DNA of 64,000 nucleotides from Oculina patagonica (taxonomy: Eukaryota): assembly GCF_052425735.1 (NCBI RefSeq), contig NC_135770.1, positions 24,924,001 through 24,988,000 of the forward strand, written 5' to 3'. Of the stretch, positions 10,109 to 16,262 are shown in pieces (position 1 is the first letter of the stretch; each line of letters opens with the position of its first letter). A program made the position numbers and the translations under genes. The notes under the pieces are model-generated. The model made no database searches. It was not told the origin of the DNA and saw only the letters and a program-made list of their open reading frames with translations.

Positions 10109-10720
10109 TTATTTTGTCTCGTCCTTATTGTTCGCTTGGGCGTGGTCCACCGGAACGACGATTACAAGAAGTTGAACAGGCCGTTCCACGGTTACGAATC
10201 CCCGACCAGCGTATGTCCTCACCGGTTCATTTGGCTTTGGGTTCTTGTACTGAACTTCAACTTTTCGTACTTTCCCATCTTTGCTTTCATGAGCTTTGGT
10301 GACTCGTCCAAGTTTCCAGTTTCCCCGGATCTGATTTGAATCCTGTATCAAGACGATGTCTCCAACTTTCACGTTGCGATGTGAGGTGTGCCACTTTTGG
10401 CGGACTAGTAAGCTGGGGAAGAAGTCGCGCGTCCATCTTTTCCAAAACCCATTGACAATGTTTTGCACGAATTCGAAACGATGACGAGGATTTGCACTCT
10501 CTCTGAATGGGCCGCTTGGCACTCTTGGGGTGGATCTCCCGAGCAAAAGGTCGTTTGGGCACAGGTATGCTCCGTCATCAGTCGTCGTGGGGTGCCTTCC
10601 TATAGGTCTTTCGTTAACGAGATTAGCGGCTTCAAAGTATATAGTTTGAAGCTCGGAAAAAGTAAGCACGTTTTCTCCGATTGCTAACGTTATAGCTCTT
10701 TTGATGGATTTGATCAATGC
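10109..10720 (-). pseudogene. pol: BEL integrase C-terminal part (DUF5641-like)
   Basis: KSIKRAI...ELQTIYFEAANLVNERP...LCPNDLLLG...FWKRW...VGDIVLI...WKLGRV...RPVQLL; cut off from its N-terminal half. Confidence 0.9.
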
Positions 10721-10816
10721 AATGAGAAAAACAGCTGAGATGGGAAGTAACGATTATCCCCAAGCCGCAAAGATCATAATCCATAACGCGTACATGAACG
10801 ACATCATAGACAGTGT

Positions 10817-12833: not shown

Positions 12834-14362
12834 AATGTAGCTTCGCATCAACCAGTGCTCATAATATTTAGCGACGGGTCGGACAACTCGTATGGCGCCT
12901 GCGCATACGCGCGGTGGAGCCTACCAGAAGGGAAATATGACAGCAGATTGATAATGTCAAAGAATCGCCTTGCCCCGAACAAGAAAGTATCGATAGATCG
13001 AGTTGAGCTGTGTGCTACAGTCTTGAGCAAAAGGCTTAAGACTTTCCTCCAAAGAGAATCTCGATACCAGTTCTCAAAATTCTACCACATCGTCGATTCG
13101 CAGATAGTATACGGCATGATCCAGAAGCAATCGTATGGCTTTAACTCCTTCGCCGCCACACGTGTAGGAGAAATCCAAGAGGGGACGGACCCTAAAGATT
13201 GGTATTGGATTGAGAGTAAACATAATATCGCTGACTGGATAACTCGCGGAAAGACGTCGAAAGAAATTGACCACGACAGTGCTTGGCAGAGAGGCCCTAG
13301 CTTTCTACAGCTACCGGAATCTCAATGGCCAATCAGCAAAGTGTCCATAACGCAGGAGTTACCTGATAAACTGAAAACGACGATGGTGGCAGATGCTAAG
13401 ATCGTAGACACCCTAGCAGGAAGGATGAATATCCACAAGTATTCCGGCTATACAAGATTGTTGCGGGTGACAGGAAGAGTGCTTGCCATGTATAAGCACG
13501 ATCCTAAGCCACCACTTAAAAGCGCAGTCCGACCATTAACTCCTTCTGACATAAGTGACGCGGAAAGATTTTGGATTCAAGACTGTCAGAAACTTATTCA
13601 TCCAGCCATCCAAAAGGGGAGATTCAAACGGCTCAGTCCAAGGGTGCGAGAAGATGGAACAATCGTGGTCGGAAACCGAGCTCGAGAATGGGTTGAGATG
13701 AGCTACGATAAAAGCGAAATAATCCTACTACCCTATGGACACCATTTTACGCGACTCTACGCGGAATACATACACCGTAGAGGACATCACGGAGTAGCGA
13801 CGACAGTCAGTAAAATTCGCACCCGCTTCTGGATACCCAAGGTACACAACATGGTAAAATCCATCAAGTTCAATTGTATGACATGCAGGATACTAGATGC
13901 TAATCCGAGCGAGCAAACAATGGGAAACCTACCCCAAGAGAGACTTAAGCCATCTCCACCTTGGCACAACACCGCTATAGATTTGTTTGGACCCTTCAAG
14001 GTACGAGATGAAGTAAAGAAGCGGACCACAGGAAAATGCTATGGAGTGTTGTTTAACTGTATGAGCACAAGAGCGGTACACGTGGATCTGGCTCCTGACT
14101 ACAGTACGGAGAAATTTCTGCTTGTTTTACGAAGATTCGTATCACTGGAGGTTATCCAGCTAAACTTTACTCTGATAACGGACCGCAGCTGGTAGCGGCT
14201 AATCAGGAATTGCAGAAGATGACCAAGAGCTGGAACTGGCAAGATCTTAACGAATTTGGAGTAACTGAGGGTTTCCAGTGGGAGTTCATCCCCGCCGATG
14301 CCCCTTGGCAAAACGGGATATCAGAAGCATTGATCAAATCCATCAAAAGAGCTATAACGTTA
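12832..14362 (+). pseudogene. pol: inverted BEL RNase H-integrase segment
   Basis: FSDGS...YGACAY, ELC, DSQIV, NIAD; HHCC zinc finger (HRRGHHG...CMTC); D (IDLFGP), D (SDNG), E (SEAL). Frameshift near 14148; opposite strand to the rest of the element. Confidence 0.92.
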
Positions 14363-16262
14363 TTTTCTCGATCCCGTATACTTCGAAAAGGATTCGTTTT
14401 CCTTGGACGTCAATTAGTGGGAGCTGGTATTTTCTGGATGATATCTTCTCCTCATCCGCGCCAACCTTAACAAGGGTGAGCTCCAACGGGGTGCCGTGAA
14501 GTCTTTCAGCCTTTGCCTTATTGTTCGTTATAAAGCTCAAAGACGATGCATTGTCCCACATGACGTTGACAAATCCTCTTGGGGTTCGGATTCTTTGCAG
14601 TTGGAGGAGGCACCTGTCTCCAGGAAGGCTGGTACATGCGTTCGATGGGGCTGGAGTGGGTGCGGCATTTGAAGGTGCAGAGCTGCTACTGACTTCCCTC
14701 TCGTGTAATGTTACATGATGTTTCTTCTTGCAGTTGCTTACGCCGCATTCCTTTGCTTTCTTGCAATTGCGTAACCGATATCCATACCTCAAGCAGGACC
14801 AACACGCTCCTTTCTCCCTCAGCATCTTGATCCTCTCTCCTACTGGCTTGGACAAGTAGAGTTTTCATTCACTTGTGAAATGCTCTGCGTTGTCGTGGAA
14901 CACGCATTTGCTGAAGGTTCCGGGTCTTTGGTGATCCTTATTCCCCGTTGCGGCGGCGTAGTGGGTAAATACTTTCGCGATCGGCGCGCTGGAGATTCTG
15001 AGTTCGGCGCTGTCATATTCAATGGCGCGCTTTTGTGTTAGCAGAAACTGGAGAAGGCTTGGAAATTTGTTGGTTCTGTCGACTGGACTGGGTTCCGAAC
15101 TTAGCAGTTTTGCCCATTCCTTTCTTATGTCGGTTGGCAGTTTCCTCTCGATGATGCCGACCGAGCTTGTCGTCGTTATTTCACTCTCTAATCCAAGCCT
15201 CCTCAGGTCCCTGTGGCCATCTTCAATGATGTTGACAAGTTCAACAAATCGCTTGTTTTCCCCTTCTTGAACAGCCTTGACTCGTCTAATATCGTTTATT
15301 ATCGCGTCAGCGACTTTGGTCGGGTCTCCATAGATTTCGTCTAACCTCTTCCACATTTCTTCGATGTCATCGCCCACACTTTTCACTCTCGCCAGGGGTT
15401 CTTTGCCCAGACAAGATCGCAGAGTGTAGGGTGCCGTATCTCTCGTTAAATGCGGCATGACTTGCTTTTGAAAGTCACTCTTGAACTGAGGATACTCTCT
15501 TAGCTCTCCCTCAAATCGAGGCATTCGGATTTTTTCCAAGTGTAGATTGGTCGAGGTTGCACAGGCAGCTTGTTTGACCTTGAAATCTCCTCCAGTTGGG
15601 TTGGAATCCTTGTTTTCGTCAGCATCGATGTGATTCTCCAGTTGTTCTACAAGTTCGTTGTATTTGCTTTGAACGATTGCAATCCATTTTATTTCCGTTT
15701 CTGCTGATTGCCTGTCCAACAATTCAAGTAGCTTGTCATGGGCCATTTTGCATTGGCTAAATGTATCCCCCAATTGGCTCTGGAGCTTCTTCATGAGCGA
15801 AACCGAGATCCTTTCGCCCTCTAAGGTATGTGCAGTACTATCACATAAAGTGTCGAATATCGCGCGCGCAGTTTCTCTCTTCACAAAGGCTTGTTCCGCC
15901 GCCCTTTGTATCTGCTCGCGCTCCTTTCTGTTCGATTCTTCGCGATTCTCTTCGGCGCGCGCTCTGGCTTCTGAAACCCCGATATCATTTACGTAGTCTA
16001 TTTTCAAGGCTGTTGCCTGGACGAACAGGTCTTGAAGTTCGGTGATCCAGCTGTCTGTGGCTTCTGCCTCTTCATCTGTGAGATGCATTACGTAAATGTC
16101 GTGCTTACCTTCTAGAATGGCCCACGCCTCGGTAAGCTGAGCGAAGTTGAGTTCTACGACTTCGATACCTCTTCTGTCAGCGATCGACTTCAGAAGTTCG
16201 TTCCGTTTGCGTGTGAATCGTGCTTTCGCCGATCGTCTGATACTCTTGGCTTCTTCTGCCAT
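14359..16262 (-). pseudogene. gag: BEL gag (DUF1759-like, zinc knuckles) and start of protease
   Basis: LEKIRMPRFEGELREYPQFKSDF; CVFHDNAEHFTSE* (stop at the expected Cys, 14865-14867); CWSCLRYGYRLRNC; CGVSNCKKKHHVTLH; MWDNASSLSFI protease site. Confidence 0.9.

Follow-up and report, generated by a model that had tools for sequence, protein, structure and literature searches.

The 64,000-nucleotide stretch of the coral Oculina patagonica genome analysed here (assembly GCF_052425735.1, contig NC_135770.1, positions 24,924,001 to 24,988,000 of the forward strand; hereafter the window, with positions counted from its first letter) carries a long terminal repeat (LTR) retrotransposon that we assign to the BEL/Pao group. 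It is 6950 bp long, occupies 9666-16615 on the minus strand, and has an interior divided into five blocks of alternating orientation. The blocks meet at four microhomology junctions, every position of the canonical element is retained, and the two LTRs are identical. The two copies of each sequence duplicated at the breakpoints derive from a single template lineage, and the junctions recur at no other locus of the assembly. Our preferred explanation, which we hold with about even confidence, is a one-off copying error in which the growing strand switched template four times while the complementary DNA (cDNA) of this copy was made. A first-pass annotation of the window had described the same arrangement; its observation is confirmed, and its interpretation is supported in part.

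Anatomy of the scrambled element

Repeat finding and self-BLAST gave the coordinates of the element, its repeats and its junctions. In element sense, the 5' LTR lies at 16297-16615 and the 3' LTR at 9666-9984, both on the minus strand and both with TG..CA ends. They are identical at 319 of 319 positions, in agreement with the first-pass annotation. Direct comparison of the flanks revealed the target-site duplication GAGGT (left copy 9661-9665, right copy 16616-16620). The surrounding DNA (9500-9665 and 16616-16780) belongs to an interspersed repeat of very high copy number, for which a first look gave hundreds of candidates at 84-92% identity, and paralogues of this repeat served as empty sites. 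In at least four of them the matches to the left and right flanks are contiguous and overlap by exactly 5 nucleotides (nt). Because the host-repeat paralogues run uninterrupted with this overlap, the 6950 bp represent one discrete insertion with a 5-bp target duplication. Given the identical LTRs and the confirmed duplication, the scrambled unit therefore behaves as a single integrated element, and host DNA is involved in none of the four junctions.

A Pfam scan identified Peptidase_A17 (E = 3.6e-43), DUF5641 (3.3e-25), DUF1759 (2.8e-12), RVT_1 (5.3e-07) and Integrase_H2C2 (3.5e-07); DUF1758, the protease domain, scored narrowly below the Pfam cut-off. Based on the Pao-type pol domains and the gag DUF1759, the element is classified by its predicted proteins as BEL/Pao. 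The canonical copies of the family have the order gag, protease (PR), reverse transcriptase (RT), RNase H (RH) and integrase (INT) between LTRs with TG..CA ends, with a short target duplication.

In the sense coordinates of one canonical copy (C5, 6403 bp), the window copy follows the path 1-2257, antisense 5384-3853, 2051-4066, antisense 3351-3248 and 5349-6403. Block A (14359-16296, minus strand; canonical 320-2257) contains the primer-site region, gag with DUF1759 and the start of PR, and is interrupted by an in-frame stop at 14865-14867. Junction 1 (14359-14362, GTTA) connects it to block B' (12832-14362, plus strand; canonical 5384-3853), an inverted segment running from the RH region to INT that includes the end of Peptidase_A17, Integrase_H2C2 and a one-base deletion at 14147. 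Junction 2 (12832-12833, CG) returns to the sense orientation in block C (10818-12833, minus strand; canonical 2051-4066), which comprises the duplicated part of PR, RT and the RH region and has an in-frame stop at 11249-11251. Across junction 3 (10818-10821, AAAG) follows block D' (10718-10821, plus strand; canonical 3351-3248), a 104-nt antisense piece of RT that duplicates 11533-11636 and carries private changes at 10788 and 10797. Junction 4 (10718-10720, TGC) leads to block E (9985-10720, minus strand; canonical 5349-6084), with the C-terminal part of INT (DUF5641) and a purine-rich end adjoining the LTR.

Blocks A, B', C and E were delimited by open reading frames (ORFs), Pfam domains and mapping to the canonical copy, block D' by repeats, family comparison and mapping, and the junctions by repeat ends and junction alignments. 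When aligned to the canonical copy, the leaving and landing sites share 4, 2, 4 and 3 bases at junctions 1 to 4. The block coordinates and the four short overlaps reproduce exactly those given in the first-pass annotation, whose account of four microhomology template switches holds as a description; it had also reported stops and a frameshift in gag and pol. In the non-coding stretch between the end of INT and the 3' LTR, block E also contains a tandemly repeated 31-nt unit (10039-10100, 94% identity); the stretch of the C9 family copy that matches it has many indels.

The breakpoints are marked by four repeats: a direct repeat of 207 bp with one mismatch (12627-12833 and 14359-14565) and inverted repeats of 214 bp with four (10818-11031 and 12832-13045), 104 bp with two (10718-10821 and 11533-11636) and 36 bp with none (10685-10720 and 14327-14362). 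Identities of 98-100% over 36-214 bp within one element are far beyond chance. Together these overlaps sum to 561 bp with seven differences; the count of about seven in the first-pass annotation stands, while its overlap total of about 520 bp was too low. The residue pairs YMDD/YMND and KKVSID/KKILID, which it had singled out, can be seen in the ORF translations. None of the 6403 canonical positions is missing, which bears out its statement that no pol sequence was lost, and the 547 bp extra are the overlaps. The rearrangement is confined to 3.3 kb, and a direct copy of the inverted RH-INT block is missing.

Sister copies and the origin of the overlap differences

A search with the whole element found few copies of this BEL/Pao family in the 529-Mb assembly. 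Three are collinear and full-length, at about 6.4 kb. C5 has identical LTRs, the target duplication CACTT and a single 1899-codon open frame; C9 has a clean 5-bp target duplication, GTGAC; and in C7 the left LTR end is truncated and the target duplication is unreadable. Three more are scrambled: besides the window copy itself, C12 bears a copy with rearrangements and a partial deletion, and C1 bears a 1.5-kb fragment. The remainder of the family consists of four solo LTRs and a single truncated copy. Identity to these relatives is similar across all blocks of the window copy. It carries about 30 lineage-private variants, stops included, yet no LTR difference, and its source is therefore not among the assembled copies. 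A solo LTR (G000:C1:9879236-9879554; L033:3237-3555) is 100% identical to the LTR of the window copy and may derive from a second insertion of the same lineage that was later reduced to a solo LTR.

At all seven sites where the overlaps differ, the state of one overlap copy is unmatched in the rest of the family, and its twin has the state of C5, C7, C9, C12 and C1. On this comparison the seven differences are new mutations and not family polymorphism. Three lineage-private variants are present in both copies of an overlap (10997/12866, 10821/13042 and 12685/14417). These shared variants, together with the seven private differences, indicate that both overlap copies descend from one template lineage. 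The first-pass annotation had offered recombination between two family members as one possible origin. Two different co-packaged RNAs would be an example. That overlaps are not identical would fit such an origin, but none of the seven differences matches any other copy, the overlap copies share lineage-private variants, and the block identities to relatives are similar, so this origin is contradicted and we regard it as extremely improbable.

Six of the seven changes fall at distances of 4-55 nt from junction 2 or junction 3, flanking the latter on either side, and the seventh (13017) lies 184 nt away. A permutation over the duplicated positions gives p = 0.02-0.05 for this clustering, a test that is partly post hoc and concerns seven events. 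We also fitted a clock model that places shared private variants before the event and unshared ones after it, relative to the density of private variants elsewhere in the element. The model fits poorly, and the overlap changes exceed expectation (likelihood ratio p = 0.03). Six of the changes are transitions, and CpG decay was ruled out as their source, only one of the seven being at a CpG. Taken together, these results suggest, without proving it, that most of the seven changes were made during the rearrangement event itself. The contrast between overlaps and LTRs, to which the first-pass annotation had given weight, is marginal (7/561 against 0/319, Fisher p = 0.053), and errors at the switches explain the differences better in view of the clustering and the clock result.

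We searched for the junctions elsewhere. A 181-nt probe across junction 1 matched end to end only the window itself in the assembly, and with the whole element as query the alignments of all other copies end at the junction coordinates, so that no junction is shared. The first-pass annotation had proposed a search for further loci with the same junctions; none was found in the assembly. Logan contigs of four public runs from four studies were also compared with window 9620-15600. No contig in these runs bridges the scrambled junctions. The runs instead contain the canonical joints (10720 to 14326, 10877 to 12987 and 12626 to 14359) and the family state at the private sites of the window copy, and the locus is not contained in them. 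Thus, the scrambled form is not widespread, and the four runs neither validate nor refute the window assembly. A metagenome scan with a 30-mer across junction 1 was blank, as was the canonical-joint control, and hence has no weight. In run X1, from another host, a family contig skips 69 gag bases and has 3 other bases instead (window 15268-15338), a deletion variant.

The two other scrambled copies have joints of their own. The C12 copy (G000:C12:19509321-19514744; L014, L019) is flanked by the target duplication CATAT, and its two LTRs show 3 differences over 319 sites. It follows the path 1-1002, antisense 3390-2089, three extra bases and then 3286-6403, such that its inversion lost 1.1 kb on one side and left a 105-nt overlap, without differences, on the other. 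The C1 fragment (G000:C1:10354613-10356143; L015:5614-7144) follows 4864-5115, 1793-2226 and antisense 3800-2938; one of its joints falls at an imperfect match of 12 nt. It lacks an LTR and borders on the ends of two other repeats, and a search of 25 kb to each side found no more of the family; it may be a captured aberrant cDNA or a remnant in a transposon nest. Independent sense/antisense joints are therefore present in three of the seven family copies with internal sequence, while about nine in ten matched copies of related BEL/Pao families appear collinear at a coarse scale.

Timing and mechanism of the rearrangement

We propose one recent, integrase-made BEL/Pao insertion whose interior would have been rearranged in a single event. 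The growing DNA strand would have left its template four times, each time re-annealing via 2-4 nt of homology, with the switches alternating between templates of opposite polarity and of its own polarity. The product keeps every canonical base, with RH-INT placed upstream and inverted, a 104-nt inverted RT filler, and overlaps of 36-214 bp at the breakpoints. Such an event most probably occurred during synthesis or repair of the cDNA destined for this site, by way of aberrant strand transfers of the element's own reverse transcriptase, which could have landed on displaced plus-strand segments or a second cDNA; error-prone copying around the switches would account for the point changes close to junctions 2 and 3. 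To produce an inversion, the growing strand must copy a template of its own polarity lying ahead. A self fold-back was rejected as this template, because the sequence in the antisense blocks had still to be synthesised by the strand, whichever way synthesis ran; the foremost candidates are a second cDNA or displaced plus-strand segments.

The cDNA stage is suggested by a copy that is extremely young yet complex, by the frequency of scrambling in the family, by joints that are internal in both LTR-bounded scrambled copies, and by known precedents. Inversions are a recognised class of defective integrated HIV-1 (human immunodeficiency virus type 1) proviruses, at 1-6% (PMC6235535, PMC9278108), aberrant strand transfers have been documented for several reverse-transcription stages (PMC12657518), and template switching is known to form complex daughter elements in plants (PMC1950507). 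Moreover, the per-copy scrambling rate (3/7) fits an error-prone copying step; chromosomal mutation of the ordinary kind, over some 40 kb of young DNA, would not fit it. Thus, we infer a timing before integration, and likewise the identity of the polymerase; scrambling no younger than integration is the most likely reading.

Several points weigh against a copying error of this kind. The outcome is nearly balanced: the three main breakpoints keep both sides, with overlaps of 207, 214 and 36 bp, and the inverted block almost exactly replaces the missing direct copy. Random strand transfers do not predict such a balance with overlaps at three breakpoints; by a rough estimate, random landing sites would give it about once in a thousand. 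The balance suggests physical pieces with overlapping ends, which we conjecture to be either plus-strand segments with displaced flaps or filled-in staggered breaks. No polypurine tracts lie just upstream of the block starts, which leaves the plus-strand-segment model without sequence support, and no observation links the event directly to the cDNA stage. Replicative chromosomal repair is marked just as much by microhomology, a templated filler and point changes close to junctions (PMC4352052). The tests are of marginal significance and in part post hoc, the 105-nt duplicate of C12 has no junction-near changes, and in the four runs, which do not contain the locus, no contig bridges the assembled junctions.

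The alternative with most in its favour is rearrangement of a canonical insertion after integration, through fork stalling and template switching (FoSTeS) or MMBIR (break-induced replication mediated by microhomology), or, as a variant, through three staggered breaks with fill-in and end joining. It shares the whole junction signature. The microhomology of 2-4 nt, the 104-nt templated inverted filler, the net duplications and the junction-near point changes are all published marks of such repair (PMC4352052), and the overlaps at all three main breakpoints would fit fill-in of staggered breaks. Chromosomal repair is disfavoured only by arguments from youth, recurrence and confinement: the LTRs differ at 0 of 319 sites, three of the seven family copies are scrambled within about 40 kb of DNA, and all junctions of the window copy and C12 are internal, with LTRs and target duplications untouched. 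We consider it unlikely but worth serious attention. Less probable still is a scrambled master mobilised in trans, the first of the two options in the first-pass annotation, in which RNA of an already rearranged copy would be packaged and copied by proteins of intact relatives and the LTRs reset to identity after the overlaps had diverged. Scrambled RNA would keep the LTR-derived ends, primer site, 5' leader and purine tract, the 1899-codon open frame of C5 could supply the proteins, and the roughly 30 lineage-private variants, including stops, beside identical LTRs would suit a source that is not among the assembled copies. This course gained no positive support, as none of the four junctions is present at a second locus of the assembly or in the four other read sets. 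In addition, the overlap differences cluster near junctions, are not evenly spread and exceed the clock expectation, and the overlaps that are younger in a stepwise history (214 and 104 bp, at 1.9%) differ more than the others (207 and 36 bp, at 0-0.5%).

It is very unlikely that the true locus holds a collinear copy and that the scramble was made by the assembler. The family is repeated, and the compared read sets neither bridge the junctions nor show the private variants of the window copy. Set against this, locus-private variants in every block argue that it was not stitched from other copies, the duplicate blocks differ at seven sites in a manner that a collapse or fold-back artefact would not produce, and the junctions have microhomology in a structure that is not a simple palindrome. 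The contig is also chromosome-sized, with its two 500-base N runs in the window (1454-1953 and 43382-43881) distant from the element. Four further candidates were rejected. Autointegration fails because no junction is at an LTR end and the overlaps are 36-214 bp in place of a 5-bp, integrase-sized duplication; a nested second copy, because only two LTRs are present in 9000-17500 and the joints fall within PR, RT, RH and INT coding sequence; and L1-type twin priming, because the element has LTRs, integrase domains and four joints. Two successive inversions would be less parsimonious, would need exact reuse of a breakpoint, and would leave the supposedly younger overlaps more diverged.

Recurrence in the family and significance

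The breakpoints of the window copy at 2051, 3248 and 3351 and those of C12 at 2089, 3286 and 3390 show a constant offset of 38-39 nt, and in each of the two copies almost the same part of RT is present a second time as an inverted duplicate of 104-105 nt. Folding of the RNA at the breakpoints yielded z-scores of -1.4 to +0.9, with no structural hot spot, and the canonical copy has no long inverted repeats able to seed the switches, the exception being the 12-nt imperfect match at one junction of the C1 fragment. No local structure or repeat accounts for the constant offset of about 38 nt, and this offset and the recurrent scrambling of the family are unexplained and worth follow-up. The 3/7 scrambled copies, the constant offset and the shared inverted RT duplicate are the grounds for a broader and decidedly doubtful proposal, that this BEL/Pao family is intrinsically prone to same-polarity DNA switching at preferred sites, such that a large share of new copies would be born scrambled and transcripts from copies with intact LTRs would give long hairpins and antisense RNA directed at the family itself, and with them self-silencing like that of Mu killer. 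If true, a family-wide tendency with hot spots would be of real interest to retroelement biologists. Mu killer is a rearranged, inverted transposon derivative with sense and antisense parts in one potential transcript, and its likeness to the window copy is structural only. A transcript from the 5' LTR of the window copy, if made, would contain 1.5 kb of antisense RH-INT, and its three inverted pairs (214, 104 and 36 bp) are predicted to be able to form double-stranded RNA.

The closest known counterparts are inverted HIV-1 proviruses, which likewise have intact ends, normal integration and a reverse-complemented internal part, with the defect ascribed to errors of reverse transcription (PMC6235535, PMC9278108, PMC12657518). 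Unlike these, the window copy is a coral LTR retrotransposon fixed in a germline assembly and has four junctions without any lost sequence, in contrast to proviral defects, which are mostly deletions; its junctions, overlaps and nearby changes can be read base by base against sister copies. In the complex LTR insertions described by Sabot and Schulman (2007; PMC1950507), an abnormal daughter also arose before integration and was inserted as one unit with a target duplication, but those elements are collinear fusions of two elements sharing an LTR, while here same-polarity switches within one lineage gave inversions. FoSTeS/MMBIR events, in the account of PMC4352052 and of Carvalho et al. 2013 as cited there, resemble the window copy in serial switches at 2-5 nt of microhomology, templated insertions in either orientation, duplications and, on marginal statistics for the window copy, junction-near mutations. 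They are chromosomal, usually span tens of kb to Mb and bring a net gain with the direct copy kept, in contrast to a rearrangement within 3.3 kb. Twin priming of L1 (PMC2912911) also yields a retroelement that is partly inverted from the outset, and its inversion joint shows microhomology together with a slight overlap or gap. It needs target-primed reverse transcription at a chromosomal nick and leaves a single 5' inversion, as opposed to the double-stranded cDNA with LTR ends of the present element.

The window copy thus adds a well-preserved case to a class that is already known, that of retroelement copies with inversions in their interior; it reveals neither a new mechanism nor a new system. 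Most of what is known of rearranged proviruses comes from surveys of the HIV reservoir, in which neither the progenitor nor the mutations close to junctions are easily read. The germline copy described here can be set against its sisters in the same genome at single-base resolution, including four switches without loss, the overlaps and the clustered changes, and it offers a natural specimen for how retroelement cDNA becomes inverted. It also calls for caution in dating insertions by LTR identity, because internal duplicates can differ while the LTRs are identical.

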